Below are positions 1 to 43,824 of a stretch of DNA of 49,152 nt, piece after piece. How positions within the stretch are numbered: position 1 is the first letter of the stretch; every line of letters starts with the position of its first letter. The notes below the pieces were generated by a model. That model did not search any database. It was not told the DNA's origin and saw only the letters and a list, made by a program, of their open reading frames with translations. Source of the stretch: Callorhinchus milii. Taxonomy: Eukaryota. The translations under genes were made by a program, and so were the position numbers. Location of the stretch: contig NW_024705390.1 in assembly GCF_018977255.1 (NCBI RefSeq), positions 1-49,152 of the forward strand, written 5' to 3'.

Positions 1-285
1 ACCCCCCCCCCACCCAATTCGCCCGCTCCGCCATCTCCCGATCACCGAACGGATCGACAAATCCCTTCGGGCCCTGCACCCCCCACCCCCCCCCCCCGAC
101 CTTCTTCTTTACTCCCCAACCCACCACCCGTTGCCCTCTGTGAGTTGATCACATCATTTATCACAATGCATTTATCAGCTGCTACAGAGAAACTCCTCTC
201 ACCGCCCTCCGCGGCGCCCCCACCCCCCCCACCCACCACCACCCACACCCCTCAATTTCTCTCCAAATGGATTGAAGCCTCTTAC

Positions 286-2948
286 TTTTCAGCTTGTGGT
301 CCAAATATTCCAGGACAATTCTAATAATCTGAATAATGGTCAGGATCAGAGCACCAAAAGCCAAGGAGCCGGTGTGATACCTGCAAACAATAATATAATA
401 ATAATAATCCTTGCATTTGGTGTGGCGTATCTTATCGCGTCGTTGAGTCTTCCCCAAGCGCTTCGCGGACTATGCCGTAAAGTGGAATTGGTGGCATTTT
501 GGGCGAAACGCGGCAGCCAATTGAGCACTGCAATGTCCCACGAACAGTCGTGGATTGAGTAAACCCATTTTTTTTTGGGGGGGGGGGGTGGGGGGAGGGA
601 TTATTACCCCCGGGAAGTGATCCATCAATTGACTAACACCCGGGTTCCTACTTACTGTTCGGTAAATAGGGGTATGGAGTAAGGAAACTTGGCTAAGGTT
701 TCCCCACACCCCCCTCGGGAATCCAACCCCAGGTCCTCTCTCTCTCTCTCTTAAAAGCACGGGAGCAGCGTGTGATGACACGGTGGCCATTTTAGGCCGA
801 GGATCCCACGTGCGTAGGCCCTGTGATCTCCCCCGTTTCTGGAATGGAACGTGCACTCTCTCTCTCTCTCTCTCTCTGGAAGGGTGACAACCACTTGCGC
901 TAATATAGCGACCTTCACGGGGGTAGCGTCCCAGAGCGCTCGCTGCTTACCTCGGACCCTACTTTCAGGGAAAGAGGGAGCAGGGTATTAGAAACACTCA
1001 CCTCAGCGCCCGGAAGAAGGAGGAGGTGACGGGGAAATAAGGGATGTCTTGGGGTTTTTTGAAGGCCCAATAGTAGGAGGCGAAAGCCCCGGCCAGGCAG
1101 CACTGCCCCAGGGCGATGACAAAGTTCATGCACCACAAGAATCCCACCACGTTGTAGATCTGGAGATTGAAGAGGTTTCTCTGGAAGAGCCCCTCGGAGT
1201 TGTACTTGTAGAATATACAGCTGGTAGTCTGGCAGTCGTAGTCCGAAGCATTGAAGGCCTGTGCAGACGAGGGAGGCTTTGTTTTACTGCCCTTTTCTTT
1301 GTCCACCCTCCACCCCTGGTGTAAGGCGGGCGCCATGTTGGCTTTGGCGCCTACAAAATGGCTGACCAGCATCACTTCCAGCGCGTGCCGTAACAATAAT
1401 CCTTGGATTTCCTACAGCACCTTTCCACGTCACTGAGGCGTCTCAAAGCGCTTCACGGAATACTTTCCTAAGGTCTCTCCCCGCCCGGGAACCGAACGCG
1501 GGTCCTCTTGCTTGCGAGGCGAGCGCTCCAACCGCTACGCCGCAGGACTCCCAAGTGCAGGAAGCAATGTGGATGGTGCCCAATGACCCGGAAGTCAGGC
1601 ATTTTCCACTGAGCAGCGTGGAAAGCCGACACCGCGCAAGAAAAAGGAAGTCATGCCGCTGCGGCCATTTCACCTCTGGGAAGCGGTCACGGACTGAAAA
1701 CACAAGTCACTACGACTCCACTGTCTCGCTCCTTCCATCACCAACAGCTTGGCCTTCCCAGACGGCTTGATACCCAATTGGGAGTGTAAATACGGAGGGG
1801 GAAAACCTCATTGAGTGGCTGATTGTGAGCAGGCGAGTGTGTGCGTGTTGCGGGTGCGCGCGGCGGCGGGGGTTAATACCGTGGGAGCGCAGCTTTCATT
1901 CCCACTAATGGTGTCACAGTTTGGAGCACTGGTGTTCAGCGCGATGACACGATACAGAGGTTCCCCGGACGTGGCCAAGTAGCTGAATTGACACGAGTTG
2001 AGGAAAAGACGAGCAGTTGCCAGTTGAGATGCACGGAAAGGCTTCACTTGATACCAGGAGAGAGATAACAGCAACAACGACTTGCATTTATATAGCGCCC
2101 TTCCCGTGAGCACTTAACGGTGGGGGGGAGGGGGGCAAGATAATAATAATCCTTGCGCCTCATCATGTGGAGTAAGGAAACTCGCCCAACGGTTCAGTAC
2201 CGCCCGGGAACAAGATTTGGGGAATAGTGGCTGAGAGTGATTTCACCCCAAGCCCCGCACCCACCTCCTCCCCGGCCTTCCCGGAGACAGACCCGATCGC
2301 CGGGCAGTTGAAGTGAAAAAGGATACAGAGCAGTCAACGCCCAATAGGCCACGCAGATGACCAAAAGCACAAAGGTACACAGTGGGTAGGCCAGGGAAGA
2401 CATGATGTGGGCAATCGCTCTGTCGGAAGAAAGGGAGAGAAGGTTTATGGAGACAACACAGGGGAAAGTGCCCAATCGCCCATCCTGTCCACTGCCCGTG
2501 ACAATTTCCCCCGTCCGCCTCACCTCCCCTCATGGCTCGCAACTCCACGTTTGTCTCAACGGCGCGTCGTCTGACTTTGCCCCAGAAACGGGCGTGAGAA
2601 CAGCCGGACAGGAAGTGACAGTGAAAGCACTGACCAGCAACAGAAGTGACATCTCCCAAAGACCTGGAAGTGCCCATCTGTGGCCATTTTTACATTGTAT
2701 CCCCGTTGTAAAGTGGTCTCTTGAGTTTGTGGACCTGAATAATGACGGTATGGGGGGGGTCGGGCGGGGGCGTGGGGGGGGGGGGGCAAGGGGAGGTTGA
2801 CCCAGCTAACGGACCAGGCTACCCCACCACCCTCGCCCCAGCACTTACTTGCTGGCCTCCCCGATGAGGGCGATCGCGATGCGGATTCGCTTCCGTAGGA
2901 AGATCAACAGCAACAGAAAGATAACCTCCAACACGATCAGGATTATAA
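286..2948 (-). CDS. SLC44A4: Choline transporter-like protein 4, five internal coding exons (partial gene): 2849-2948, 2327-2419, 1880-1982, 1002-1258, 286-380
   Basis: All exons have AG/GT ends and compatible phases. They splice to [76 protein letters not shown]...CAPT-AFN...[52 protein letters not shown]...[35 protein letters not shown]. This matches the CTL/SLC44 family; the [15 protein letters not shown] motif and MHC linkage favour A4 over A2/A5. Confidence 0.9.
392..760 (-). mobile_element. tRNA-derived SINE (decayed) in SLC44A4 intron
   Basis: Reverse strand shows a B-box (ggttggattccc), gggaaaccttagccaagtttccttactcca, the body ttgcagtgctcaattggctgccgcgtttcgccc and an (ATT)n tail, all homologous to the intact SINE at 27975-28310. 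Confidence 0.8.
1440..1550 (-). mobile_element. Internally deleted SINE (head joined to tail)
   Basis: Reverse strand reads gagtcctgcggcgtagcggttggagcgctcgcctcgcaagcaagaggacccgcgttcggttccc (tRNA-like head), followed directly by gtgaagcgctttgaga (tail). Confidence 0.65.
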
Positions 2949-3057
2949 CTGGACAAAGAGGAGTTTTCACACTTTACAGGAAATCCTGGGAAGCGCTTTG
3001 AGACGTCCTCCCAATGTGACAAGACGCTGTATGTTTTTGGGTCAGCCGGGCGTCGGC

Positions 3058-3530
3058 GTCTGACCCACGTCACCGCAATCAGCCGCGTGTCTGACCCACG
3101 TCACCGTGATCAGCCGCGTGTCTGACGCACGTCACCGTGATCAGCCGCGTGTCTGACACACGTCACCGAGATCAGCCGCGTGTCTGACCCACGTCACCGC
3201 GATCAGCCGCGTGTCTGACCCACATCACCGCGATCAGCCGCGTGTCTGACCCACATCACCGCGATCAGCCGCGTGTCTGACCCACGTCACCGTGATCAGC
3301 CGCGTGTCTGACCCACGTCACCGTGATCAGCCGCGTGTCTCACCCACGTCACCGTGATCAGCCGCGTGTCTGACCCACGTCACCGTGATCAGCCGCGTGT
3401 CTGACCCACGTCACCGTGATCAGCCGCGTGTCTGACCCACGTCACCGTGATCAGCCGCGTGTCTGACCCACGTCACCGTGATCAGCCGCGTGTCTGACCC
3501 ACGTCACCGTGATCAGCCGCGTGTCTGACC
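3058..3530. repeat. 30-bp minisatellite, about 15 units (tcagccgcgtgtctgacccacgtcaccgtga)
   Basis: Directly visible tandem array. The same unit occurs at 43083-43260, and a 40-bp variant at 19770-19985 and 32250-32410. Confidence 0.95.
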
Positions 3531-4406
3531 AACGTGGAAACCCATCACTGTGCTTAACAGTCCCCAAACCAGGCCTGAGAGTCACACGTGTGTATGTCAC
3601 CTCCACACGGATCTCTCCCCGTGTCTGGGATGGAGTGCTCTCTCTCTCTCTCTCTCTGTGCAGGACACATGGTGGTTACATGACCCTGGAGAGAGTTGGC
3701 CAGAGCCAAGGCTTGGGGACCCCGAGTGTGTGTGTGTGTGTGTGTGTGAGTGAGTGTGTGTGAGTGTGAGTGGTTTGGGGGGGACCCAGAGTGTGTGTGT
3801 GAGTGTGTGAGTGAGTTGTGTGAGTGTGTGTGGTTTGGGGGGGACCCAGAGTGTGCGTTGGGGTAACTGCTGGAGTCTAACCCACTAAACCCACAGCTTA
3901 GCCCCTGAGAGCCCTGTCTCAGTGTGAGTGTGTGTGAGTGTGTGAGTGAGTGTGTGTGACCCCCTGAGAGCCCTGTCTGGCAGCTTCCCGCTGCTTGTCC
4001 AGCGAGGACTGCCCGACCCCTCAGGGCTTTGGCCGCAGGATAGCAGGAGCCGAGTGGGCCACGTGGCTTCCCCAGTGGCCAGTGGTAACCCGCTCAGTGC
4101 CAGGGCCCCGGTGCCAGTGGGCACTGGATGGCCAATACCCTGTGAGCTTCACTGGGATCACTTCCCGGTCTCAGGAAGGACGTCCCCGGTGAGCGCGGGG
4201 GGTGGGGGGGATTCCACTCCCCCAGTGGCCCTGTCACAGCCCAGTCCCTCACTCCCTCCCTCCCTCCCTCACTCCCTCCCTCCCTCCCTCCCTCCCTCAC
4301 TCACTCCCCCACTCCCCCAGTGGCCCTGTCACAGCCCAGTCCTGATCCTCACAGTGGGTTAGTGACTGGGGATCACGAGAGGTTGTGTGGCGCTGACCGG
4401 CTCTTA

Positions 4407-7400
4407 CCTGCGGTTGATCATCGGGGACTTGGCCGCTTTCTTCACCTGTTACCAGAAACAGATGTCAGAGTCAGACCGTCAATGTCTGTAGGTTACAGTC
4501 AGACAGTCACAGGGAAAATGCCTGTATGTCACAGTCAGACAGGAAACGCCTGTGCATTACAGTCAGACAGAAATTGCTGTACATTGTAGGGTTTGACAGT
4601 GAGGTGAGCAGAGAACACGTCACACACGTCCACTTGCAGAGTGTAGTCTGACCCGGTGTACAGCCGCACTGTTATTCACTTACTGGATGGACGGTTGTAC
4701 TGGTGAGTCCCGGGTCCTGTCAATAAACAGACGTCAATTACACACAGACCCAGTGATGCTCGTTCAGCCCTCAAACACACACACATACACACACACACAC
4801 ACAACAGTCAGTTACACACACAGAGACAACACACACATATATAAAACCCAATCTCACACATACAGACAACAGCCGGTCTCACACTCTCACACACAACACT
4901 CAGTAACACAGACAGACAGTGACAGGTGTGGGGCTCAGTGAACCGCAGGACCAATGATGTGATAATTATAATTATAAAACACTGGTTAGGCCTCAACCAC
5001 AGACTGTGGTCAGTTCTGGGCCCCACACTGTAGGGTTAGGGTTAGTTAGAGACTGTGTTCAGTTCTGGGCCCCACACTGTAGGGTTAGAGTTAGTTAGAG
5101 ACTGTGTTCAGTTCTGGGCCCCACACTGTAGGGTTAGGGTTAGTTAGAGACTGTGGTCAGTTCTGGGCCCCACACTGTAGGAAGGATGTCAAGGCATTGG
5201 AGAGTGTGCAAAGGAGATTGACCGCGATGGCACCAGGAATGAGGGCTTCAGTTATCAGGAGAGGCCACAGACGTGAGGATTGTTCTCCTTGGAGCAGAGA
5301 AGGTTCAGAGGAGACTCCAGAAGTTTTGAAAATGATGAGGGGATTCGATAGGGGGAACAAGGAGACACTATTCCCACTGGCGGGTAGGACGGTAACCCCA
5401 GGACACCCATTCAAAATAGTTGTTAAAAGAAACAGAGTGGAGGGGAGGAGACATTTTTATCAGACGCGAGTTGTTGGGATCTGGAATGTATTGCCTGAAA
5501 GGCTGATGGGAGCTGATCAGGGCTATGGGGGGAGAGCGGGGGAGTGGGGTTGATCAGGGCTATGGGGGGAGAGCGGGGGAGTGGGGTTGATCAGGGCTAT
5601 GGGGGGAGAGCGGGGGAGTGGGGTTGATTTGTATCGCACTTTTCAAAGAGACAGACACGATGGGCTGAATGGCCTCCTTCTGTGCTGTATAATTCTATGA
5701 TTCTCTCTGATGATCGGCTCCCGCGACAGTGCCATTTATTCACCTTTTCGCTCTCGTTTTCTTTTCCAGAAGAGAATCCCCACAATCCCAGACACCAGCA
5801 AAGCCCCGATGATGAGGCCCAGGATCCAGGAAGTGGAACCGGCCGGAGTTCTCCCTGTTTTCCCATCTGTTCGGAGTGAACAACAACCAAACTTTCATTA
5901 AGGTCCTGAGAGCGAGAGAGGAGCGGAGTCTGAGAGAGGGAGAGGGTCAGACGATGAGAAGAGACAAACGAGAGAGAATGAGAGAGAGAGAGAGAGAGAG
6001 AGATCTGAAGAGTATTGGAGGACGGGAAGAGAGAGAGGTGAGGAGTATGAGAGAATATTGGAGAACGGGATGAGAAGGGGCGATGGGCGGCTGTTTAGAG
6101 TAGACAGAGAGTTCTCCCGGAGACAGACTGACACCTCATGTTATTCCCGGTTTCCCGCTGTGACCTTATGTGTGTGGATGACCTATGTATGTGGTTGACA
6201 CCCAATCCTCCTCCAGCTGTGACTCCAGATCCCTGATGTCCTGTCAGTTTGTTTGTCAGACATCAAGGACTGGTTGAGCGTAAACTTCCTGTAGCTGAAC
6301 ATCAACAAGACAGAAGCCATACTCCTTGGCTCCCATCGTGTCTCCTGTGGCTCTGACCTCCTCAACCTCCCTGTCCTTTGCCTAAGACTTACTGAACCTG
6401 TACATAACCTGAGCGTCAGCTTCGACCCTCAGCTGTCCTTCCTCCCCCACATCCGGTCCCTGACCAGGACCACTTTCCTCCACCTCCTCCACATTGCCCA
6501 CCTCCGACCTTACCTCACACCCAACACAACCAAAACCCTTGTCCATGTGTTTGTCACCTCCCACCTTGACTATTCCAATGCCCTCCTCTCTGGTCTCCCC
6601 AACCTCACTATCCACAGACCCCAACTAATCCAGAACTCCACCGCCCGTATAACCACCCGCTCGACACACCTCACCCCATCACCCCCATCACCCCCATCAC
6701 CCCGGCCCTCACCAGGCGCCACCGGCTCCCTATCAGAGACACCATCCACTTCAAGATCCTCACACTTGTCTACACGTCCCCGGCACCTCCTTAGTTTCCC
6801 AACCTTTCCTACTCCTCACTCCACCACCCGCCCCCTCCGCTCGGTTGGCTCCGGCCTCCTGCTTGTACCTCGTCCCTTCTGCTCCACCATCAGTGGCTGA
6901 GCTGACAGCCACTACGGTCTGAAACTCTGCAAATCCTTCCCTCAATCCCTCCACATTGCCCCCTCCTTCCCCATTTTCACATCACACCTGAAGACCTTCC
7001 TCTCTGACTGTGCTTACGGTCCCCTCCCCCTCCCCCTGTGTCAGCCCCACCACTGTTAAGTGCTCGAGACGCTGCCCCGTGTGAGGTTGCTGTGTAAACC
7101 CGAGTTGTTGTTGTTGATCTTACCCCACGGCACCTCCAACACCCCCTGGAGGCTGCTGTGCTCCACCAGACAGGAGAAGCCCTGCTCCCCCGCGGAGCCC
7201 GTCTCCAGCTCCATCTGCTTCACTGTCTGAAAGGTGTGGTCGTGGTTGGGTAATACACCGCTGGACTCCACCTCGTGGACAGTGTTGCCGTCCCTTGTCC
7301 AGGTCACCTCGATGGGCCGCGGATAGAAGCCAGTAACAAGACAGGAGAGAAGGGCTCTCCCCCCCACGTCCCTCCTGTAACTGACTGAGACGTCAGGGCG

Positions 7401-13244: not shown

Positions 13245-13269
13245 NNNNNNNNNNNNNNNNNNNNNNNNN
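13245..13269. other. Assembly gap (25 N)
   Basis: Run of N; there is also a single N at 43771. Confidence 1.
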
Positions 13270-17600: not shown

Positions 17601-20103
17601 CCCATAGCCCTGATCAACCCCACTCCCCCGCTCTCCCCCCATAGCCCTGATCAACCCCACTCCCCCGCTCTCTCCCCATAGCCCTGATCAACCCCACTCC
17701 CCGCTCTCCCCCATAGCCCTGATCAACTCCACTCCCCCGCTCGCCCCCCATAGCCCTGATCAACCCCACTCCCCGCGCTCTCCCCCCATAGCCCTGATCA
17801 ACCCCACTCCCCCGCTCTCCCCCCATAGCCTTGATCAGCTCCCAAAAGCCTTTCAGGCAACACATTCCAGATCCCAACAACTCGCGTCTGATAAAATGTC
17901 TCCTCCCCTCCCATCTGTTTCTTTTAACAACTATTTTGAATGGGAGTCCTGGGGTTACCGTCCCACCCGCCAGTGGGAATAGTGTCTCCTTGTTCCCCCT
18001 ATCGAATCCCCTCATCATTTTCAAAACTTCTGGAGTCTCCTCTGAACCTTCTCTGCTCCAAGGAGAACAATCCTCACGTCTGTGGCCTCTCCTGATAACT
18101 GAAGCCCTCATTCCTGGTGCCATCGTGGTCAATCTCCTTTGCACACTCTCCAATGCCTTGACATCAGTCCCAGAAGTGACCACAGTCTATAACTAACCCA
18201 AACCCTACAGTGTGGGGCCCAGAACTGAACACAGTCTGTGGCTGAGTCCTAACCAGTGTTTTATATTTATAATTATCACATCATTGGTCCTGTGGTTCAT
18301 TGACCCCCACACCTGTCACTGTCTGTCTGTGTTACTGAGTGTTGTGTGTGAGAGTGTGAGACCGGCTGTTGTCTGTATGTGTGAGATTGGGTTTTATATA
18401 TGTGTGTGTTGTCTCTGTGTGTGTAACTGACTGTTGTGTGTGTGTGTGTGTGTGTAACTGACTGTTGTGTGTGTGTGTGTTTGAGGACTGAACGAGCATC
18501 ACTGGGTCTGTGTGTAATTGACGTCTGTTTATTGACAGGACCCGGGACTCACCAGTACAGCCGTCCATCCAGTAAGTGAATAACAGTGCGGCTGTACACC
18601 GGGTCAGACTACACTCTGCAAGTGGACGTGTGTGACGTGTTCTCTGCTCACCTCACTGTCAAACCCTACAATGTACAGCAATTTCTGTCTGTCTGACTGA
18701 CTGTCTGACTGTAATGTACAGGCGTTTCCTGTCTGACTGTGACATACAGGCATTTTCCCTGTGACTGACTGACTGTAACATAGAGATATTGTCTCTCTGA
18801 CTCTGACTCCATCTTCTATCTGTTTCTGGTCACAGGTGTAGAAAGCGGCCAATCATCCAATGGTCAATTAACAGGTAAGAGCCGGTCAGCGCCACACGGC
18901 CTCTCGTGATCCCCAGTCACTAACCCGCTGTGAGGATCAGGACTGGGCTGTGACAGTGCCACTGGGGGAGTGGGGGAGTGAGTGAGGGAGTGAGGGACTG
19001 GGCTGTGACAGGGCCACTGGGGGAGTGGGGGAGTGAGTGAGGGAGTGAGGGACTGGGCTGTGACAGGGCCACTGGGGGAGTGGAATCCCCCCCCCGCGCT
19101 CACCGGGGACGTCCTTCCTGAGACCGGGAAGTGATCCCAGTGAAGCTCACAGGGTATTGGCCATCCAGTGCCCACTGGCACCGGGGCCCTGGCACTGAGC
19201 GGGTTACCACTGGCCACTGGGGAAGCCACGCGGCCCACTCGGCTCCTGTTATCCTGCGGCCAAAGCCCTGAGGGGTCGGGCAGTCCTCGCTGGACAAGCA
19301 GCGGGAAGCTGCCAGACAGGGCTCTCAGGGGGTCACACACACTCACTCACACACTCACACACTCACTCTCACACACACACTCACACTGAGACAGGGCTCT
19401 CAGGGGCTAAGCTGTGGGTTTAGTGGGTTAGACTCCAGCAGTTACCCCAACGCACACTCTGGGTCCCCTCCAAACCACACTCACTCACACACTCACACGC
19501 ACTCTCTGGGTCCCCCCCAAACCACTCACACTCACACACACTCACACACTCACACACACACTCGGGGTCCCCCCCAAACCACTCACACACTCACTCACAC
19601 ACACACACACTCGGGGTCCCCAAGCCTTGGCTCTGGCCAACCCTCTCCAGGGTCAGGTAACCACCATGTGTCCTGCACAGAGAGAGAGAGCACTCCATCC
19701 CAGACACGGGGAGAGATCCGTGTGGAGGTGACATACACACGTGTGACTCTCAGGCCTGGTTTGGGGACTGTTAAGCACAGTGATGGTTTCCACGTGTGTC
19801 AGACACGCGGCTGATCACAGTGATGGTTTCCACGTGTGTCAGACACGCGGCTGATCACAGTGATGGTTTCCACGTGTGTCAGACATGCGGCTGATCACAG
19901 TGATGGTTTCCACGTGTGTCAGACACGCGGCTGATCACAGTGATTGTTTCCACGTGTGTCAGACACGCGGCTGATCACAGTCCGTTGTCTCTGTGTGTGA
20001 CCCGGTGATTGGGGACTTAATGACCGTCACTGGTCTCTGTTTGTGAGTGACCTCTGTTTGATTACAGAACCTGGGAGTCTCCAGTCCCACCGTCCATCAG
20101 TCA
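14650..20103 (+). pseudogene. MHC class I-like heavy chain, copy B (leaderless as assembled). Exons: alpha1 14650-14910, alpha2 15068-15343, alpha3 15951-16229, TM 17307-17429 (donor GT>AT), cyt1 18539-18571, cyt2 18836-18874, cyt3 20068-20103, probable last exon from 20405
   Basis: The alpha1-alpha3 reading frames are open with class I motifs. The leader and promoter are inverted and the TM donor is mutated, so functional status is uncertain. Confidence 0.75.
15368..15867 (+). mobile_element. About 500-bp segment containing a decayed L2 3' fragment, present only in intron 3 of copy B
   Basis: Other copies read actaatat-ggcc with a 104-nt intron; B has 500 extra nt bounded by ATAT. It translates to L2-like LPVTEQINFKILSL..LAPPYLCDLL..LRSAGSSLLIVPR..PKLWNSL. 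Confidence 0.75.
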
Positions 20104-20479
20104 GTGAGTAACAGTGAGGCTGAACACGTACCAATGGACATGAACTCAGTGTCTGTGTGACTGTGACGTGTTCCGTGTTCACTTGTATTTCAGAACTCTG
20201 GGATCACAGGTGTTTTGTGACTAACTCCTATGTATAGGCACTGACTGTACTGATGTACAGGAGTTTACTGTGTCTGTTATGTACAGTCGCTTCCTAACCA
20301 ACAGTATTTTACTCTCCAGTTGTCGCCCCTGATTTACCTGTTTCATTAGTATCTGATCAGTAACGTGTGTAATACATACACCCGGTCTCCGGCTTTGTGT
20401 CCAGAGGAGCGGAGCACAAACATACAGAAACCTGTGACTTTTATATTAACAAGAAACTGTGAACTTTATATACACACAC

Positions 20480-25596: not shown

Positions 25597-28500
25597 ATGA
25601 AGGTCCTTGTGATGGCTCTCGCTGCCCTCCTGCCTGTGTGCAGTGCGCTCCACAGTAAGTGGCCCCAGACTCTGACTGTCACTGTGTGTTATAGTATATT
25701 CTGTGTATTTTGGGGGGTGCGGAGGGGGAGATTGGAGCAGAGATTGCAGCGGAGTTCCTTTTCTCAGTCTGTCACCATTCACTGACACTGTACTCTTCCC
25801 TTCCGTGTGTACACTGTGAGCTGTGCCCTGTGTGTACACTGTGAGCTGTGCCCTGTGTGTACACTGTGAGCTGTGCCCTGTGTGTACACTGTGAGCTGTG
25901 CCCTGTGTGTACGCTGTGCCTTGTGTGTACACTGTGAGCTGTGCCCTGTGTGTACACTGTGAGCTGTGCCGTGTGTATACACTGTGAGCTGTGCCCTGTG
26001 TGTACACTGTGAGCTGTGCCCTGTGTGTACACTGTGAGCTGTGCCGTGTGTGTACACTGTGAGCTGTGCCCTGTGTGTACACTGTGAGCTGTGCCGTGTG
26101 TGTACACTGTGAGCTGTGCCCTGTGTGTACACTGTGAGCTGTGCCCAGTGTGTACACTGTGAGCTGTGCCCTGTGTGTACACTGTGCCCTGTGTGTACAC
26201 TGTGAGCTGTGTGGGCATTTGACAGTTGCGAGCGTGTGCTGTATGTGACAAGTGTGTGTGAAGCGTGTGAACAGTATGTACTCAGTGACCTGTTACACAC
26301 GTACAATCAGTGTGTGTGTTTGTGTCTGACAGAGCCTCAGGTGTTGAGATACTTACACACACTGGTGTCAGCGGACGGAGAACTTCCAGAGTACTACTGT
26401 GCTGTGATGTTGGAGGATGTTGAGATCTATCACTACGACAGCAACAGTGAGAGAATTGTCAGTCGGATTCCCGGTGTTCAGACGGCTGTTAGAGAACAGC
26501 GCTTCCCTGTACGTGTGGAGAGGGTGAAGGCAGATTATATGACGGTGAAGGAGAATATGTTGTATATGATGAAGAGGAGGAATATTACGAGCGGTGAGTG
26601 GTTTAATATTCACTGTAAACATCCAGCGCCGTTCACTGTGTGTGTGTGTTGAGTACATGTGAGTGTGTGTGTGTCTTTGTCATTGTGTGTTTGTGTGAGT
26701 TTCCGTGTATCTGTGTGAGTGTGTGTTTGTGGGTGTGTTGAGTACATGTGAGGGAGACGAGGTGTGTGTCTCTGTCATTGTGTGTGCGGTGTGTGTTTGT
26801 GGTGTACAAGTGTGAGGGGGAGTCAGTGAGTGTTTTTTTCTCTTTGTCAGTGAGTGTGTGAGACAGTCGGTGATGGACAGACACACTCTGCACTGATCAC
26901 AATGGCTGTCAATGGCTATTTCAGGGGCTCACTATGGCCAGGTGTTGTCTGGCTGTGAGGTGAGGGAGGACGGCACTACAGACGGACACATCACAGTCGC
27001 GTTCGATGGGGAAGATTTTCTCAGCTTTGACAAAAACGACCTGAGATGGATTTCTGCTGCTCCCGAGGCTCAGACCCTGAGACGGAAACTGGACAACGAC
27101 AGAGACATGAATCAGTATTGGAAACAGAAACTGGAGAATGATTGTCTTAATCGGATGGAGGAATACTATCAGTATTCAAAGTCCACCTTCCAGCGACAGA
27201 GTGAGTGTGTGTTGTTACTAATATGGCCTTATTATATGGTTAAGCCTCGCTGTGTCAGGGTGGGCTCAGTGCTGAGCTGTGTGTGACTGTGCTCCCCTCC
27301 CCAGGCCGCCCTGACGTCTCAGTCAGTTACAGGAGGGACGTGGGGGGGAGAGCCCTTCTCTCCTGTCTTGTTACTGGCTTCTATCCGCGGCCCATCGAGG
27401 TGACCTGGACAAGGGACGGCAACACTGTCCACGAGGTGGAGTCCAGCGGTGTATTACCCAACCACGACCACACCTTTCAGACAGTGAAGCAGATGGAGCT
27501 GGAGACGGGCTCCGCGGGGGAGCAGGGCTTCTCCTGTCTGGTGGAGCACAGCAGCCTCCAGGGGGTGTTGGAGGTGCCGTGGGGTAAGATCAACAACAAC
27601 AACTCGGGGTTACACAGCAACCTCACACGGGGCAGCGTCTCGAGCACTTAACAGTGGTGGGGCTGACACAGGGGGAGGGGGAGGGGACCGTAAGCACAGT
27701 CAGAGAGGAAGGTCTTCAGGTGTGATGTGAAAATGGGGAAGGAGGGGGCAATGTGGAGGGATTGAGGGAAGGATTTGCAGAGTTTCAGACCGTAGTGGCC
27801 GTCAGCTCGGCCACTGATGGTGGAGCAGAAGGGACGAGGTATAAGCAGGAGGCCGGAGCCAACCGAGCGGAGGGGGCGGGTGGTGGAGTGAGGAGTAGGA
27901 AAGGTTGGGAAACTAAGGAGGTGCCGGGGACGTGTAGACAAGTGTGAGGATCTTGAAGTGGATGTGTTCTCTGAGTCCTGTGGAGTCCTGTAGCTCAGTG
28001 GTTAGAGCACTCGCTTTGCAAGCGAGAGACCTGAGTTCAATTCCAGGCAGAGGGCGAAACCTCGGGCAAGTTTCCTTACTCCACACAGAGCCTAATAATA
28101 ATCCCTCCAAAAAACCAAAAACAATATAATAAAATTGGTCATTTTCAATCTACGACTGTTTGTGGGACATTGCTGTGCGCAATTGGCTGCCGCGTTCGCC
28201 CTCAAATATACAGTCAATTCACTTTACAGTATATTCTGTGAAGCGCTTTGGGACGTCCTCCCGACGTGAAAAGCGCTATATCAAATGCAAGGATTATTAT
28301 TATTATTATTATAGGGAGCCAGTGGCGCCTGGTGAGGGCCGGGGTGATGGGGGTGATAGGTGTGATGGGGGTGAGGTGTGTCGAGCGGGTGGTTATACGG
28401 GCGGTGGAGTTCTGGATTATTTGGGGTCTGTGGATAGTGAGGTTGGGGAGACCAGAGAGGAGGGCATTGGAATAGTCAAGGTGGGAGGTGACAAACACAT

Positions 28501-31500
28501 GGACAAGGGTTTTGGTTGTGTTGGGTGTGAGGTAAGGTCGGAGGTGGGCAATGTGGAGGAAAGTGGTCCTGGTCAGGGACCGGATGTGGGGGGGGAAGGA
28601 CAGCTGAGGGTCGAACCTGACGCTCAGGTTATGTACAGGTTCAGTGAGTCTAAGGCAAAGGGCGGTGAGGTTGAGGAGGTCATAGCCACAGGAGACACGA
28701 TGGGAGCCAAGGAGTATGGCTTCTGTCTTGTTGATGTTCAGCTACAGGAAGTTTACGCTCAACCAGTCCTTGATGTCTGACAAACAAACTGACAGGACAT
28801 CAGGGATCTGGAGTCACAGCTGGAGGAGGATTGGGTGTCAACCACATACATAGGTCATCCACACACATAAGGTCACAGCGGGAAACCGGGAATAACATGA
28901 GGTGTCAGTCTGTCTCCGGGAGAACTCTCTGTCTTCTCTAAACAGCCGCCCATCGCCCCTTCTCATCCCGTTCTCCAATATTCTCTCATACTCCTCACCT
29001 CTCTCTCTTCCCGTCCTCCAATACTCTGCAGATCTCTCTCTCTCTCGATTTGCATTCTCTCATCTCGTCCTCTGACCCTCTCCCTCTCTCAGACTCCTCT
29101 CCTCTCTCACTCTAATGTTGCTGTTCACTCCGAACAGATGGGAAAACAAAGAAAACTCCGTCCGGTTCCACTTCCTGGATCCCGGGCCGGATCATTTTGC
29201 AGGCGTCTGGGATTGTTGTTGGGATTCTCGTCTGAAAATGAGAAAAGGTGAATAAATGGGACCGTCGCGGAGGCCGATTATCAGAGAGAACCACAGAATC
29301 ATACAGCATAGGAGGAGGCCATTCAGCCCATCGTGTCTGTTCCAGCTCTTTGAAAAGTGCTATCAAAATCAACCCCACTCCCCCGCTGTCTCCCCATAGC
29401 CCTGATCAACCCCACTCCCCCGCTCTCTCCCCATAGCCCTGATCAACCCCACTCCCCCGCTCTCTCCCCATAGCCCTGTTCAACCCCACTCCCCCGCTCT
29501 CTCCCCATAGCCCTGTTCAACCCCACTCCCCCGCTCTCTCCCCATAGCCCTGATCAACCCCACTCCCCCGCTCTCTCCCCATAGCCCTGATCAACCCCAC
29601 TCCCCCGCTCTCTCCCCATAGCCCTGATCAACCCCACTCCCCGCTCTCTCCCCATAGCCCTGATCAACCCCACTCCCCCGCTCTCTCCCCATAGCCCTGA
29701 TCAGCTTCCAACAGCCTTTCAGGCAACACATTCCAAATCCCAACAACTCGCTTCTGATAAAATGTCTCCTCCCCTCCCCTCTGTTTCAGGCCTTTATCAC
29801 TGGTCCACACCTTTATCCCCTCAAGGCTGGACTATGGGAACTCTCCCCTCGTCGGCCTTCCCGGCCCTCCCTCCACACGGCAGGTCATTCAGAACTCTGC
29901 AGCTCATGTATTGTCCCGCACCAGACACCGCGCACACATCACTCCCACCCTCGCCCTCACCCTCACTCCCACCCTCGCCCTCACTCCCACCCTCGCTCGC
30001 CTACACTGGCTCCCCATCCTCCAGTGGATCGAATTCAAGATCCTCATCGTCACCTACAAGGCCATTCACAGCCTCGCTCCCTCCTACCTCTCCAACCTAC
30101 TATCCCCCTACCTACCTGCCTGTACCCTCCGTTCCTCTGGCTCCGGTCTGCTCTACGTCCCCCGCCCCAACCGCCCGACCATCTGTGGCCTTCAGCCTCT
30201 CAGCCCCGAGGCTCTGGAACTCCATCCCCAGTGCCTTTGCCGCTTCCTCCCTTTCCTCCTTCAAGGCCGGTCTCAAGACCTTTCTCTTTGACCTTCAGCC
30301 TTCAGCTCCGCTCTCGACTCTCTACCCCCTCCTCACCCCCTCCCTTCCCTCTCCTCACCATGACCATCTCCCCCCTCCTCGCTCCTCCCCTTCCCTCACC
30401 ATTTCCCCCCCTCCTCGCTCCCTCCCTTCCCCCCCCTCACCCTGACCATCTCTCCCATCCTCTCTCCCTCCCTCCCCTCACTCTGACCATTTCCCCCCAA
30501 TGCTCGGGTCCTGACCCAACTGTACAGCGCCTTCGGACGTCCTCCTGATGTGAAAGGCGCTCTATAAATGGAATCTTGTTGTTCTTGTTGTTTCTTTTAA
30601 CAGCTATTTTAAGTCGGTGTCCTCGGGTTACCGACCCACGCGCCAGTGGGAATAGTGTCTCCTTGTACCCCCTATCGAATCCCCTCATCATTTTCAAAAC
30701 TTCTAGAGTCTCCTCTGCTCCAAGGAGAATAATCCTCGCGTCTGTGGCCTCCTGATAACTGAAGCCCTCATTCCTGGTGCCATCGCGGTCAATCTCCTTT
30801 GCACACTCTCCAATGCCTTGACATCCTTCCTACAGTGTGGGGCCCAGAACTGAACACAGTCTCTAACTAACTCTAACCCTACAGTGTGGGGCCCAGAACT
30901 GAACAGTCTCTAACTAACCCAAACCCTATAGTGTGGGGCCCAGAACTGAACACAGTCTGTGTCTCAGGCGTAACCAGTGTTTTATAATTATAACATCACT
31001 GGTCCTGTGGTTCACTGACCCCCACACCCGTCACTGTCTGTCTGTGTTACTGGGTGTTGTGTGTGTGTGACTGTGAGACCGGCTGTTGTCTGTATATGTG
31101 AGACCGGGTTTTATATGTGTGTTGTCTCTGTGTGTGTAACTGACTGTTGTGTGTGTGAGGGCTGAACGAGCATCACTGGGTCTGTGTGTAATTGACGTCT
31201 GTTTATTGACAGGACCCGGGACTCACCAGTACAGCCGTCCATCCAGTAAGTGAATAACAGTGCGGCTGTACACCGGGTCAGACTACACTCTGCAAGTGGA
31301 CGTGTGTGACGTGTTCTCTGCTCACCTCACTGTCAAACCCTACAATGTACAGCAATTTCTGTCTGTCTGACTGACTGTCTGACTGTAATGTACAGGCGTT
31401 TCCTGTCTGACTGTGACATACAGGCATTTTCTCTGTGACTGACTGACTATAACATAGAGATATTGACTGTCTGACTCTGACTCCATCTTTCATCTGTTTC

Positions 31501-32531
31501 TGGTCACAGGTGAAGAAAGCGGCCAATCATCCAATGGTCAATTAACAGGTAAGAGCCGGTCAGCGCCACACGGCCTCTCGTGATCCCCAGTCACTAACCC
31601 GCTGTGAGGATCAGGACTGGGCTGTGACAGTGCCACTGGGGGAGTGGAATCCCCCCCCACCCCCCCCCCGCGCTCACCGGGGACGTCCTTCCTGAGACCA
31701 GGAAGTGATCCCAGTGAAGCTCACAGGGTATTGGCCATCCAGTGCCCACTGGCACCGGGGCCCTGGCACTGAGCGGGTTACCACTGGCCACTGGCGCAGC
31801 CACGCGGCCCACTCGGCTCCTGTTATCCTGCGGCCAAAGCCCTGAGGGGTCGGGCAGTCCTCGCTGGACAAGCAGCGGGAAGCTGCCAGACAGGGCTCTC
31901 AGGGGCAAAGCTGTGGGTTTAGTGGGTTAGACTCCAGCAGTTACCCCAACGCACACTCTGGGTCCCCTCCAAACCACTCACACTCACACACACTCACACA
32001 CACTCACTCACACTCACACACACACACTCTGGGTCCCCCCCAAACCACTCACACACACTCACTCACTCACACACACTCGGGGTCCCCAAGCCTTGGCTCT
32101 GGCCAACCCTCTCCAGGGTCAGGTAAACACCATGTGTCCTGCACAGAGAGAGAGAGAGCACTCCATCCCAGACACGGGGAGAGATCCGTGTGGAGGTGAC
32201 ATACACACGTGTGACTCTCAGGCCTGGTTTGGGGACTGTTAAGCACAGTGATGGTTTCCACGTGTGTCAGACACGCGGCTGATCACAGTGATGGTTTCCA
32301 CGTGTGTCAGACACGCGGCTGATCACAGTGATGGTTTCCACGTGTGTCAGACACGCGGCTGATCACAGTGATGGTTTCCACGTGTGTCAGACACGCGGCT
32401 GATCACAGTCCGTTGTCTCTGTGTGTGACCCGGTGATTGGGGACTTAATGACCGTCACTGGTCTCTGTTTGTGAGTGACCTCTGTTTGATTACAGAACCT
32501 GGGAGTCTCCAGTCCCACCGTCCATCAGTCA
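25597..32531 (+). CDS. MHC class I-like heavy chain, copy C, with truncated TM (stop 29233-29235). Exons: leader 25597-25654, alpha1 26333-26593, alpha2 26925-27200, alpha3 27305-27583, TM 29138-29247, cyt1 31213-31245, cyt2 31510-31548, cyt3 32496-32531, probable last exon from 32621
   Basis: Leader through alpha3 are intact with canonical splice sites. The TM exon translates DGKTKKTPSGSTSWIPGRIILQASGIVVGILV*. Confidence 0.9.
27975..28310 (+). mobile_element. Young full-length tRNA(Ala-TGC)-derived SINE with L2-type tail, private to copy C
   Basis: A-box tagctcagtggttaga, anticodon arm ctcgc-tttgcaa-gcgag, B-box gagttcaattc, body ttgctgtgcgcaattggctgccgcgtt, and tail gcgctttgggacgtcc...gcgctatatcaaatgcaagg(att)n. 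The empty site ctctga/tagggag is seen in A, B and D. Confidence 0.92.
29789..30595 (+). mobile_element. 5'-truncated L2 LINE insertion, private to intron 5 of copy C
   Basis: Encodes LARLHWLPILQWIEFKILIVTYKAIHSLAPSYLSNLL..LRSSGSGLL and ends cagcgccttcggacgtcc...aaaggcgctctataaatggaatcttgttg. It is flanked by tgtttc on both sides; the empty site is seen in B. Confidence 0.85.
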
Positions 32532-35343
32532 GTGAGTAACAGTGAGGCTGAACACGTACCAATGGACATGAACTCAGTGACATGTGTAATAAATAAACCC
32601 AGTCCCTGCTCTTTGTGAAGAGGAGCAGCGCATAAACATACTTTATATTAATTTTTTATACACTTTTTGTGAACATCTTTTATAAACTTGTGACTTTTAT
32701 ATAAAATGAAGAGAATTGTTGTATTTATATAAATACAAAGAATGTTTCATATACAGTGTATATAACCGATTAGATTTATTTGTAGCATTAAAGGAATGTG
32801 TGTGATGTGTAACACGGCTGTACAGGAAGGTTGTGTCACCTGTAACCAGTCTGTGTAACAGCAGCTCATGTGTGTTCTGCGCTGTGATTCACAGAACATT
32901 TATTCTTTGTGAGTTTCAGCAACAAATCAAAATAAACTGTGACACAAACGGCCAATTAATATTGGAGCCAAATCCATCATTATAAACACATGGACTGTAG
33001 TGTGTGAGCGAGTGTGAGAGTCACTGTGATCACACTCAGACTGTAGTGTGAGCGAGTGTGAGAGTCACTGTGATCACACTCAGACTGTAGTGTGTGAGCG
33101 AGTGTGAAAGTCACTGTGATCACACTCAGACTGTAGTGTGAGCGAGTGTGAGAGTCACTGTGATCACACTCAGACTGTAGTGTGAGCGAGTGTGAGAGTC
33201 ACTGTGATCACACTCAGACTGTAGTGTGTGAGCGAGTGTGAGAGTCACTGTGATCACTCTCAGACTGTAGTGTGTGAGCGAGTGTGAGAGTCACTGTGAT
33301 CACTCTCAGACTGTAGTGTGTGAGCGAGTGTGAGTCACTGTGATCACTCTCAGACTGAAGTGTGTGAGCGAGTGTGAGAGTCACTGTGATCACTCTCAGA
33401 CTGTAGTGTGTGAGCGAGTGTGAGTCACTGTGATCACACTCAGACTGTACCCCCCCCCCGGGGCTGTGCCCCCCCCCCGGAGCTGTGCCCCCCCCCGGAG
33501 CTGTGCCCCCCCCCCGGGGCTGTGCCCCCCCCGTGGGGCTGTACCTGTTGCTCACTGTATAACAAATGGATGATCCGTCCAATCACCGCCACATGTCGGG
33601 GACACAGTCGGGATCTCGGGGCCTTTTTCCCGCCTCTCCAGCTCGGGGGCGGCACGTGATCGGCTCCAACTGCCACTGAGCGCCGAGCGCAGCCTCGAGC
33701 GGGAGCCGTTGGGCAGCAGCAGCGTCACGTGGGTCTGAGTCCAGCCAATCGGGAGCGGGAGTTGGGGAGGAGCACGTGGTCTGAGCGCGGGCGGAAGCCG
33801 TTGGGGGGCGTCACGTGGTCTGAGCGCGGGCGGGAGCCGTTGGGGGGCGTCACGTGGTCTGAGCGCGGGCGGGAGCCGTTGGGGGGCGTCACGTGGTCTG
33901 AGCGCGGGCGGGAGCCGTTGGGGGCGGGAGGGAGAGACCCTTTGCCGAGATGTGGTGTTGGCAGTTAGTCAGTAGGACTGGAACCATGTGAGTGCGGTCC
34001 CACTGAGGAGGGTGAGGGAGGAGAGGCGGTGGAGGAGGATGGAGTGGTCGACGGTGTTGAACGTGGGGGAGAGGTCGAGGAGGGAGTGGGAGCGCTGGTC
34101 ACAGAGAGAGAGAGGACGCCATTTGTTAATTTGACGAGTGTTGTCTCTGTGCTGTCGGCCGTCACCGTGAAAACCAGACTGGAGGGACGGGAGGAGGGAG
34201 CGGAGGGGCTCGAGTGCGGAGTGGAGGGGCTCGAGGAGCGAACGGAGGGGCTCGAGTGGGGAGTGGAGGGGCTCGAGGAGGGAGTGGAGGGGCTCGAGGA
34301 GGGAGTGGAGGGGCTCGAGGAGGGAGTGGAGGGGCTCGAGGAGGGAGTGGAGGGACTCGATTGGGGAGTGGAGGGGCTCAAGGAGGGAGCGGAGGGGCTC
34401 GAGGAGGGAGTGGAGGGGCTCGAGGAGGGAGTGGAGGGGCTCGAGGAGGGAGTGGAGGGTTTCGATTGGGGAGCGGAGTGGCTCGAGGTGGGAGCGGAGT
34501 GGCTCGAGGAGGGAGTGGAGGTGCTCGAGGAGGGAGCGGAGGGGCTCGAGGAGGGAGCGGAGGGGCTCGAGGAGGGAACGGAGGGGCTCGAGGAGGGAGC
34601 GGAAGGGCTCGAGGAGGGAGTGGAGCTGCTCGAGGAGGGAGTGGAGGGACTGGATTGGGGAGTGGAGGTGCTTGAGGAGGGAGTGGAGGAGGGAGTGGAG
34701 GGGCTCGAGTGGGGAGTGGAGGGGCTCGGGTGAAGAGTGGAGGGGCTCGAGTGGGGAGTGGAGGGGCTCGAGGAGGGAGTGGAGGAGCTCGGGTGGAGAG
34801 TGGAGGGGCTCGGGTGAAGAGTGGAGGGGCTCAAGTAGGGAGTGGAGGAGCTCGGGTGGAGAGTGGAGGAGCTCGGGTGGAGAGTGGAGGGGCTCAAGTA
34901 GGGAGTGGAGGAGCTCGGGTGGAGAGTGGAGGGGCTCAAGTAGGGAGTGGAGGAGCTCGGGTGGAGAGTGGAGGAGCTCGGGTGAAGAGTGGAGGGGCTC
35001 AAGTAGGGAGTGGAGGAGCTCGGGTGGAGAGTGGAGGGGCTCGAGGCGGGAGTGGAGGGAGAGGTGTAGCACATGTTCCAGGGCCTTGGCCAGGAAGGGT
35101 GGGTTTGAAATGGGTCTGAAATTCGTGAGAGTGGAGGGATCGCGGGTTGGACTTTTGAGGAGATTCTACTCACTCACTCACTCACTCTGACAGACACACG
35201 ACACGATTGACACAGTCACAATCACATCATATACACTCACACACACACACACACACACCCTCTCTCACACACTCACACCCTCTCTCCCACACACTCACAC
35301 CCTCTCTCTCACACACACACCCCCACGGGGAGGAACCACAGAT

Positions 35344-41500: not shown

Positions 41501-43365
41501 ATCGAATCCCCTCATCATTTTCAAAACTTCTGGAGTCTCCTCTGAACCTTCTCTGCTCCAAGGAGAATAATCCTCACGTCTGTGGCCTCTCCTGATAACT
41601 GAAGCCCTCATTCCTGGTGCCATCGCGGTCAATCTCCTTTGCACACTCTCCAATGCCTTGACATCCTTCCTACAGTGTGGGGCCCAGAACTGAACACAGT
41701 CTGTGTCTGAGGCGTAACCAGTGTTTTATAATAATAATTATCACATCACTGGTCCTGTGGTTCACTGACCCCCACACCCGTCACTGTCTGTCTGTGTTAC
41801 TGGGTGTTGTGTGTGAGAGTGTGAGACCGGCTGTTGTCTCTCTATGTGTGAGACCGGGTTTTATATGTGTGTGTTGTCTCTCTGTGTGTAACTGACTGTT
41901 GTGTGTATGTGTGTGTGTGTGTTTGAGGGCTGAACGAGCATCACTGGGTCTGTGTGTAATTGACGTCTGTTTATTGACAGGACCCGGGACTCACCAGTAC
42001 AGCCGTCCATCCAGTAAGTGAATAACAGTGCGGCTGTACACCGGGTCAGACTACACTCTGCAAGTGGACGTGTGTGACGTGTTCTCTGCTCACCTCACTG
42101 TCAAACCCTACAATGTACAGCAATTTCTGTCTGTCTGACTGACTGTCTGACTGTAATGTACAGGCGTTTCCTGTCTGACTGTGACATACAGGCATTTTCC
42201 CTGTGACTGACTGACTATAACATAGAGATATTGACTGTCTGACTCTGACTCCATCTTTTATCTGTTTCTGGTCACAGGTGAAGAAAGCGGCCAATCATCC
42301 AATGGTCAATTAACAGGTAAGAGCCGGTCAGCGCCACACGGCCTCTCGTGATCCCCAGTCACTAACCCGCTGTGAGGATCAGGACTGGGCTGTGACAGTG
42401 CCACTGGGGGAGTGGGGGAGTGAGTGAGGGAGTGAGGGACTGGGCTGTGACAGGGCCACTGGGGGAGTGGAATCCCCCCCCCCCATCCCCCCCCCCCCGC
42501 GCTCACCGGGGACGTCCTTCCTGAGACCGGGAAGTGATCCCAGTGAAGCTCACAGGGTATTGGCCATCCAGTGCCCACTGGCACCGGGGCCCTGGCACTG
42601 AGCGGGTTACCACTGGCCACTGGGGCAGCCACGCGGCCCACTCGGCTCCTGTTATCCTGCGGCCAAAGCCCTGAGGGGTCGGGCAGTCCTCGCTGGACAA
42701 GCAGCGGGAAGCTGCCAGACAGGGCTCTCAGGGGCAAAGCTGTGGGTTTAGTGGGTTAGACTCCAGCAGTTACCCCAACGCACACTCTGGGTCCCCCCCA
42801 AACCACTCACACTCACACACACACACTCACACACACACACACACACACACTCACACACACACACACACACACTCACACTCACTCACACACACTCGGGGTC
42901 CCCAAGCCTTGGCTCTGGCCAACCCTCTCCAGGATCAGGTAAACACCATGTGTCCTGCACAGAGAGAGAGAGAGAGAGAGCACTCCATCCCAGACACGGG
43001 GAGAGATCCGTGTGGAGGTGACATACACACGTGTGACTCTCAGGCCTGGTTTGGGGACTGTTAAGCACAGTGATGAGTTTGTGTGGGTCAGACACGCGGC
43101 TGATCACGGTGACGTGGGTCAGACACGCGGCTGATCGCGGTGACGTGGGTCAGACACGCGGCTGATCGCGGTGAAGTGGGTCAGACACGCGGCTGATCGC
43201 GGTGATGTGGGTCAGACACGCGGCTGATCGCGGTGACGGGTTTCCATGTGGGTCAGACACCCGGTGTGATGGACAGCACGAGGTCACAGCACATTGCCTG
43301 CAGATGGTGTGAGACTAACCAGGAGTTTGGGTGTATTTTTGTTCTCAGGAACCCGGAGCGAGTGA
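35547..43365 (+). CDS. MHC class I-like heavy chain, copy D. Exons: leader 35547-35604, alpha1 38473-38733, alpha2 38925-39200, alpha3 39305-39583, TM 40691-40813, cyt1 41981-42013, cyt2 42278-42316, probable terminal exon from 43349 (GTRSE*, stop 43363-43365)
   Basis: All exons are open with canonical splice sites. The terminal exon is inferred from the acceptor tttttgttctcag and is the least certain part. Confidence 0.88.
36330..36680 (+). mobile_element. L2 3' fragment in intron 1 of copy D
   Basis: Translates [46 protein letters not shown] and ends in the shared tail cagcgccttggaacatcc...gaaaagcgcttt. Confidence 0.75.
36985..37215 (-). mobile_element. CR1 RT fragment in intron 1 of copy D
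   Basis: The reverse strand gives [14 protein letters not shown]...[16 protein letters not shown]...LEYCVHLW across frameshifts. Confidence 0.8.
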
Positions 43366-43824
43366 GGAACGGAGAATGGAGGAGCGGAGCTGAGGGACTG
43401 AGAGGAGCACAAGCGAAGGCCTGAGGGTCCTGGTGTCTCCTTTGCTCTCAGTCACTGATTCTCTCTGAGCGTCACTGGTATAACAGCAGATTCTGTTCAC
43501 ACTGACGGTGCCTTATCACATCATTGAGACGTCTCAAGTGAAGTGAATTGACTGTATTTGTGGGCGAAACATCACATTTAAAAATTCAAGATTCTCTATT
43601 AATAGTAATATCAATAACACAATGATATAAAAATATAGAGAGTGTATCTCGGGAATTGTAGAAAACTGTTGGAGTACTGAGAGTCTGTGTCTCTGTCCCT
43701 CTCTCTCTGTCTCTCTCTCTGTCTCTGTGTGTGTCTCTCTCTCTGTGTCTCTCTGTCTTCCCGTTCCCCCNTCTGTATCTCTGTCCATCTGTGACACCAG
43801 TTGTCACCAGCAACTGGGGGAGGG

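Follow-up and report, generated by a model that had tools for sequence, protein, structure and literature searches.

The window analysed here, 49,152 nucleotides (nt) of Callorhinchus milii (assembly GCF_018977255.1, contig NW_024705390.1, positions 1-49,152), is a stretch of cartilaginous-fish major histocompatibility complex (MHC) in which class I copy A runs, as assembled, into the 3' half of the transporter gene SLC44A4 (protein CTL4) on the same strand. A preliminary description had reported this arrangement with coordinates off by 1-2 nt and had proposed a fusion locus. We find that the locus is not a fusion gene and that the boundary stems from duplication, rearrangement or assembly. 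It adds another case to an already known class of features, one that has the layout of a conjoined gene but lacks, in the RNA sampled, the chimeric transcript that defines one. On balance we think it probable that copy A and SLC44A4 are two separate genes that are not spliced together, and that the join at the minisatellite array between them is mis-oriented, collapsed or structurally variant. The pattern as such is not due to chance, with E values of 2e-14 for PF04515, 1e-15 for MHC_I and 8e-18 for C1-set.

Copy A, SLC44A4 and the interval between them comprise the following elements (positions in the window, with the source in brackets):

About 8249-7985, minus strand: copy A alpha1 exon (sequence)
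7784-7509, minus strand: copy A alpha2 exon (sequence)
7402-7127, minus strand: copy A alpha3 exon (sequence)
5866-5744, minus strand: copy A transmembrane (TM) exon, phase 1 to 1 (sequence, RNA contigs)
4716-4684, minus strand: copy A first cytoplasmic exon (cyt1), 33 nt, GPGTHQYNRPS, phase 1 to 1 (sequence, RNA joint)
4445-4408, minus strand: copy A second cytoplasmic exon (cyt2), 38 nt, SEESGQVPDDQPQ, exit phase 0 (sequence, RNA contigs)
3536-4407, minus strand: class I 3' flank common to A-D (self-comparison, alignment)
3058-3535: minisatellite with a unit of 31 base pairs (bp), 15.4 copies, 478 bp, closing the class I duplication unit (Tandem Repeats Finder)
2949-3057, minus strand: junction segment, consisting of about 20 nt of post-array sequence, a fragment of a short interspersed element (SINE), a polypyrimidine tract and the AG of exon a
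2948-2849, minus strand: SLC44A4 exon a, CTL4 residues about 322-354, entry phase 1, beginning with TTATAA (tblastn, alignment)
2419-2327, minus strand: SLC44A4 exon b (tblastn)
1982-1880, minus strand: SLC44A4 exon c (tblastn)
1258-1002, minus strand: SLC44A4 exon d (tblastn; PF04515, E 2.4e-14)
380-286, minus strand: SLC44A4 exon e (tblastn, 91% identity to residues 506-537 of P0002, the CTL4 of the shark Chiloscyllium)

All copy A exons from alpha1 through cyt2 have AG/GT borders, and 1460 nt separate cyt2 from the exon a acceptor on the same strand. Scanning of the minus strand from 4407 to 2949 and blast agree with the preliminary description that neither a class I terminal exon nor AATAAA or ATTAAA lies in between, leaving copy A without a stop-bearing last exon or poly(A) signal of its own in this span. 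Of 12 further poly(A) variants only AAGAAA occurs there, inside cyt2, and blast detected no copy of the last exons of the B/C or D kind (see below) downstream of A in the window. The phases had likewise been read correctly, as cyt2 (phase 0) joined to exon a gives TTA TAA, that is L followed by a stop, and splicing from the TM or cyt1 donor, both in phase 1, would preserve the CTL4 reading frame.

The splicing of copy A can be followed in three RNA runs (X1, X3 and X17), which were chosen through their class I and repeat content and may represent tissues without SLC44A4 expression; a fourth run, X9, behaves like whole-genome DNA with a depth of about 10 per copy. Statements on RNA refer to the contig pieces and joints listed for positions 1-6000, with 246 weakly supported joints and the majority of contig pieces outside that list. 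The joint between TM and cyt1 (4715/5743) is found in X1, X3 and X17 and is absent from X9, one side of it measuring 34 nt (32 nt plus 2 fortuitous cyt2 bases). The ends of the RNA pieces are exact, the TM piece 5743-5867 corresponding to the 123-nt exon with one fortuitously matching base on each side. Among the joints listed the TM donor is connected only to cyt1, and cyt1 only to cyt2.

Two contigs reveal what follows cyt2, which in its A-type form ends in ...CAACCGCAG directly at the donor. Record 2 of X1, a minor contig of 291 nt, aligns to 4527-4407 with 1 mismatch and ends at the cyt2 donor, and it derives from copy A because this segment carries A-specific indels and the diverged cyt2. 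It departs from the genome one base past cyt2, and its further 170 nt are unplaced among the pieces listed. Record 16 of X17 is the dominant class I contig of that run (749 nt, depth 86.9), and the depths of 14.8 in bin 4601-4800 and 16.1 in bin 4401-4600 equal 86.9 x 34/200 and 86.9 x 37/200, respectively, the 37 nt being made up of 36 nt of cyt2 and one fortuitous G. From this arithmetic copy A emerges as the main expressed copy in X17, with an mRNA that reads TM-cyt1-cyt2-G... and continues for 26 more bases. In both contigs the A-type cyt2 is thus followed by G and then by a base other than T; exon a begins with TT.

RNA depth is 0 in X1, X3 and X17 on 2201-2800, which holds exon b and introns, as well as on 3601-3800 and 4201-4400, and reaches 4.08 in X17 on 3401-3600. 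Exon a, 100 nt in length, has no RNA piece above the shortest listed (55-78 nt) in any of the three runs, exon c is reached only by one unspliced contig (depth 2.5), over 8 nt, and across the runs the depth ratio of bin 2801-3000 goes with that of the SINE bins rather than that of the class I exons. Spliced SLC44A4 coverage is found in none of these three runs, selected as they were via class I and repeat content. Chimeric class I-SLC44A4 RNA was not found among the joints listed in X1, X3 and X17, where rare chimeras may remain. The fusion, or the capture of the transporter exons as 3' untranslated region (UTR), put forward in the preliminary description is therefore contradicted by the G instead of T after A-type cyt2, by the absence of RNA from exon b and by the lack of a long exon a piece.

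Several candidates for additional transcribed elements were rejected. A last exon hidden in 3201-4407 (at 3685, 3574, 4347, 4019 or other AG+G sites) is excluded by RNA depth that is zero or too low per bin. Weak SINE-derived acceptors at 2985 and 3007 remain compatible with the depth, but any exon begun there would extend as far as exon a and its donor, in conflict with the lack of RNA on exon b. On exon d, X1 shows a depth of 28.6 that does not reflect expression, as depth is 0 at position 1070, pointing to a short high-depth word match. An RNA-only joint 2189/3536 (a 1346-nt skip in X1, X3 and X17 with depths of 31-87, absent from the DNA run) has CG..GT ends and one side in a SINE and is probably repeat-related.

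Exons a-e cover residues about 320-537 of Chiloscyllium CTL4 and are separated by introns of 429, 344, 621 and 621 nt, as short as had been described; SLC44A4 continues past the window start, downstream of exon e. The gene is not complete within the window, since about 180 downstream residues fall outside it and the upstream exons were not found: CTL4 residues 1-315 gave no tblastn match at E<10 anywhere in the 49 kilobases (kb), which bears out the earlier claim that no upstream SLC44A4 exon is present in the next 46 kb. The five exons are without lesions, as had also been noted, showing no frameshift, no stop and preserved splice sites. Splicing of a-e yields a peptide of 215 amino acids (aa) with identities of 80% to Chiloscyllium, 82% to Heptranchias and 82% to bichir CTL4. 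Its best library matches are named CTL4 proteins (74-82% identity versus about 55% for CTL2), and a tree places it among early-diverging vertebrates, next to bichir and beside sharks and rays. Exons a-e are CTL4, nearer to CTL4 than to CTL1, CTL2 or CTL5.

The peptide shows 0 deviations at the 79, 100 and 112 columns that are conserved at >=98%, 95% and 90%, respectively, in 149 vertebrate CTL4 proteins, the median of other species being 0-1 (1 at the 112 columns), and hence exons a-e belong to a constrained orthologue. In X9 the DNA depth on the SLC44A4 exons is 7-16 (7-10 on exon b) versus roughly 10 per copy on A-specific segments. Exons a-e are thus neither a decayed relic nor a recent extra copy and look like part of one working SLC44A4; the recent partial duplicate that had been considered for this locus is disfavoured by the single-copy DNA depth and by the 0 deviations at 112 CTL4 columns. 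As the exons are single-copy and fully conserved, the front half of SLC44A4 must lie elsewhere. No elephant-shark CTL4 protein was found among the proteins of 73-231 aa and 395-1256 aa searched, where all matches came from other species, and its absence would be in keeping with an SLC44A4 gene interrupted in existing assemblies. Two Logan-derived sequences, P0158 and P0159, were rejected as chimaera copies, as the tree groups them with paddlefish and lungfish and contig L001 of P0159 is plain cDNA. In Chiloscyllium, SLC44A4 spans 87 kb, with no other gene called inside it or within 10 kb.

Parts of the introns of the C. milii gene and its vicinity (390-760, 1391-1560, 2095-2215 and 2970-3040) are packed with one very abundant tRNA-type SINE, whose word depths of up to 10^4-10^5 in RNA and DNA runs swamp the depth near exons a and e.

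Copy A is a class I heavy-chain gene with a peptide-binding superdomain, a C1-set domain, a TM exon and phase-1-spliced cytoplasmic exons. Its alpha2 exon matches PF00129 MHC_I (E 9.6e-16) and its alpha3 exon C1-set (E 8.4e-18) in Pfam; alpha1 gives only a weak sub-threshold match to MHC_II_alpha (E 0.009), and the alpha1 domain is divergent and probably nonclassical, judging by sequence. Self-comparison of the window delimits five class I copies:

About 8600 to 3058, minus strand: class I copy A
14548 to about 20400, plus strand: class I copy B
25821 to about 32600, plus strand: class I copy C
38135 to about 43400, plus strand: class I copy D
47588 to 44574, minus strand: class I copy E

The sequence between cyt2 and the array belongs to the class I unit. 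The 3' flank of A is 85-90% identical to 18169-19981, 30589-32409 and 41669-43264 in self-comparison, with a 97-nt stretch identical in A, B, C and D in the alignment, and in B, C and probably D this flank would separate cyt2, as an intron, from the predicted last exon. The alignment further shows that cyt2 has 39 nt and exit phase 1 in B, C and D versus 38 nt and phase 0 in A. The array is matched by self-blast at 43083-43264 (D), 19792-19981 (B) and 32260-32409 (C), its unit being 31 bp in A and D and a 40-bp variant in B and C. Past the array, A continues for about 20 nt with GCCGACGCCCGGCTGA (compare ACACCCGGTGTGA in D) and then enters the junction SINE, a 5'-truncated antisense element of tRNA type of which 2970-3032 matches a repeat at 28220-28281 with 84% identity.

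The 3' flank is also a mosaic with respect to copy relationships: cyt2 sets A apart from B, C and D, a 75-nt indel (3979-3900) groups A and B versus C and D, and the array unit groups A and D versus B and C, which fits frequent gene conversion or recombination among the class I copies. The 31-bp minisatellite (3201-3600) is over-represented in RNA contigs relative to the flank segment 4001-4200, with an X3 RNA/DNA ratio of up to 0.65 versus 0.016.

In the sister copies a predicted last exon lies beyond the array, which is why a reader without further tools could not find one for A:

20068-20111, plus strand: predicted last coding exon of copy B, 86 nt past the array (sequence, alignment, blast)
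32496-32593, plus strand: predicted last exon of copy C, 98.9% identical to that of B, AATAAA at 32588 (sequence)
43349-43393, plus strand: candidate last exon after copy D, 85 nt past the array, with the very strong acceptor TTTTTGTTCTCAG/GAACCC

The acceptor in B and C reads ...GATTACAG/AACCTGGG, and entry in phase 1 after the 39-nt cyt2 would result in EPGSLQSHRPSVSE followed by a stop; a poly(A) signal follows about 90 nt further on in C (AATAAA), with AATACA at the matching place in B. The exon at 43349 starts with GAACCCGGAGCG. Read in phase 0 it would give an EPG... frame and a stop, homologous to B and C, and read in phase 1, the phase of D itself, GTRSE and a stop. Compared with the B/C exon it has 1 extra nt at its 5' end, and the cyt2 of A is 1 nt shorter than those of B, C and D. 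Because the phases match solely in this combination, the homologous E-P-G frame would be retained only if the cyt2 of A were joined to the exon at 43349, which moreover starts with G and then A, as the RNA demands of the last exon of copy A. The phase mismatch at D hints that the assembly has exchanged the 3' ends of A and D, or else that the intervening block inverts. The B/C last exon (20068-20111 and 32496-32539) shares 78% identity, as a paralogue, with the cyt1 exon plus flanking sequence (blast to 4778-4656), which points to an internal duplication of a cytoplasmic-exon module within the class I unit.

These features suggest how the boundary may have arisen. The interval is the ordinary 3' flank of a class I duplication unit that ends in the 31-bp minisatellite, and since the array of A is followed by about 20 nt, the SINE and the exon a acceptor instead of a last exon, it marks a breakpoint where the class I cluster ends against an SLC44A4 intron. 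The mRNA of copy A uses the cyt2 donor and joins a real last exon, and 3201-4407 contains none that fits. The join at the array would be mis-oriented or collapsed in the draft assembly, or the region would be structurally different between animals; one possibility is that some 40 kb lying between the opposed 3' flanks of A and D are flipped, through mis-orientation or as a real inversion polymorphism, in which case the true last exon of A would be the phase-0 EPG exon at 43349. The misassembly caveat of the preliminary description thus gains weight, as the real last exon of A is not where the assembly needs one, while the order array end-SINE-exon a is supported by contigs. The doubtful part is whether the body of copy A lies upstream of the 478-bp array. 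This doubt stems from the missing last exon of the A mRNA, from the pattern in X3, where the junction has a depth of 13.6 yet all A-specific flank segments have zero, from the gaps in the sequence (25 N at 13245-13269 and a single N at 43771), from the poly-G sequence at copy E and from the fragmentation of the assembly, the C. milii assembly having been called highly fragmented (Verissimo et al. 2023, PMC10751288).

Several points weigh against two separate genes with a faulty or variable join. The junction of array end, SINE and exon a is real DNA, as it is matched without mismatch by independent contigs, one from RNA (X3 record 17, covering 2994-3069 and 54 nt more) and one from DNA (X9 record 29, covering 2799-3010). 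The adjacency lies within a gap-free contig (1-13244), and a long-read assembly would have spanned the array. The link from the cyt2 of A to 43349 would follow from one base, a phase argument and parsimony. The exclusion of the acceptors at 2985 and 3007 assumes that the longest RNA pieces are those listed, and with no SLC44A4 expression in the three RNA runs these are silent on the normal partner of exon a.

Part of this evidence is what one would expect if the assembly were correct and a class I block of at least 46 kb (A-E) were nested inside one working SLC44A4 intron, an arrangement that we regard as unlikely but worth serious consideration. Exons 1-10 would then lie beyond the window end on the minus strand, and copy A would have lost its last exon at the insertion boundary, its mRNA ending at a cryptic site at 2985 (GATTTCC, DFL then stop), at 3007 or further downstream. 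The constrained single-copy SLC44A4 exons do require a 5' half somewhere, the local junction is backed by contigs of two independent studies and sits in one gap-free contig, the acceptors at 2985 and 3007 begin with G and then A as the RNA requires, the X17 depth in 2801-3200 is compatible with a 26-nt piece, and the 87 kb of the shark gene suggest that long introns are tolerated. However, no upstream exon is present within 46 kb although the other introns measure 0.3-0.6 kb, and the Chiloscyllium gene has no called internal gene. A collinear piece of 170 nt from 2985 or 3007 would be expected among the longest X1 pieces, yet none is listed; the exon formed in this way would reach exon a with its strong donor, yet RNA on exon b is zero, and the cryptic-end region has no poly(A) signal. 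Transcription of the host gene would also have to cross sense-strand class I genes with AATAAA at 5735 in A and at 45510 and 44344 in E.

That SLC44A4 has been severed, by a deletion, by an inversion between inverted copies or by growth of the cluster, appears quite improbable to us. The five exons would then be an orphaned 3' half or an old partial duplicate and unexpressed, and copy A would be a 3'-truncated class I copy. Such an outcome would agree with the absence of RNA from exon b and of long pieces from a or c in three runs, and with the lack of an elephant-shark CTL4 protein at 73-231 or 395-1256 aa; truncated genes are common at duplication borders in MHC regions. Yet 0 deviations at 112 columns, the absence of frameshifts and stops and the intact splice sites exclude a long unselected period, and the single-copy DNA depth opposes a recent duplicate. 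Moreover, the RNA runs, picked via class I and repeats, may come from SLC44A4-silent tissues, and proteins of 232-394 aa are outside the search.

A genuine class I-SLC44A4 fusion, ending either in ...QPQL and a stop with the transporter exons as 3' UTR or in an ectodomain followed by the CTL4 C-terminal helices, is in our view very improbable and would have to be a rare product or confined to an unsampled tissue. It would account for the shared strand, the lack of a poly(A) signal and of a competing strong acceptor in 1.46 kb and the phases given in the preliminary description, and an RNA contig does pass the array end into the SINE, placing transcription within 46 nt of exon a. Against it, the A-type cyt2 is followed by G in the dominant X17 and the X1 contigs whereas exon a starts with T, exon b depth is zero and a long exon a piece is missing in libraries with an A-type depth of 87, and in the joints listed the TM and cyt1 donors lead only to cyt1 and cyt2, respectively. 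A stop codon before several exon junctions targets an mRNA for nonsense-mediated decay, and the UTR form would carry such a stop. We give hardly any more credence to a combined scenario in which the class I cluster lies inside, or has recently split, the only SLC44A4, the A-D block occurs in two orientations, and a phase-1 cyt2 copy facing exon a would encode an in-frame class I ectodomain-CTL4 protein in some tissue or haplotype.

Known systems resemble parts of this arrangement. The human RCCX module (C4-CYP21-TNX with partial TNXA and STK19P) and the class I blocks of primates likewise consist of repeated units of several kb, each ending at a repeat, and in RCCX-type loci an unrelated neighbour gene is kept only in part at the border. 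In contrast to these, SLC44A4 exons a-e are single-copy and fully conserved and not a decayed extra copy, and the class I units occur in both orientations. Conjoined or read-through genes, several of which are annotated in the human MHC class III region, share the common strand, the missing poly(A) signal and the strong downstream acceptor, but their defining chimeric RNA was not found here and the class I donor goes to another exon. The factor VIII intron 22 inversion and mis-oriented contigs at inverted repeats are comparable in that A and D are inverted repeats of about 5 kb with 88-97% identity, with about 40 kb between their opposed 3' flanks and arrays, so that a flip would pair the phase-0 cyt2 of A with 43349; for the present locus such a flip is suggested by phase, one base and parsimony. 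The genes nested in NF1 (EVI2A, EVI2B and OMG) would be a precedent for an intact host 3' half beside unrelated genes, but they sit on the opposite strand, whereas here two of the five class I copies are on the SLC44A4 strand and no upstream host exon is visible.

For annotation these results mean that gene models of copy A should not be extended into SLC44A4 and that class I last exons sit past a minisatellite that is easily missed. For the assembly they provide a concrete suspect join at 3058-3535, with its partner array at 43083-43264, in the poorly assembled holocephalan MHC. A nonclassical class I cluster beside the class III gene SLC44A4 would differ in synteny from sharks, and if the cluster were indeed nested in a working SLC44A4 intron, this would be an unusual case of an immune multigene family growing inside a housekeeping transporter gene.

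The TM exons and 3' ends of the class I copies show further differences. The TM donor of copy A lies in the context AAAAG/GTGAATAAA, where GTGAATAAA is an in-frame stop overlapping the poly(A) signal AATAAA, and this motif is kept in A (5744-5733), C (about 29250), D (about 40815) and E (about 45512). Retention of the TM intron would extend the frame to ...KRKRERK-G-E-stop, with the stop overlapping the canonical AATAAA, and a short-tailed class I isoform could thus be produced by intronic polyadenylation after the TM exon. In copy B a 4-bp deletion eliminates the GT donor of the TM exon together with the AATAAA signal, and the TM exon of copy C (29124-29290) is only 80% identical to that of A, with several indels. 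In copy E homology ends 40 bp before cyt1 and is followed by poly-G-rich sequence (44340-44580); a possible last exon of this copy has the acceptor ...cactccag/TCTGAG, which from the TM phase would give V and then a stop, with AATAAA at 44349-44344 on the minus strand.

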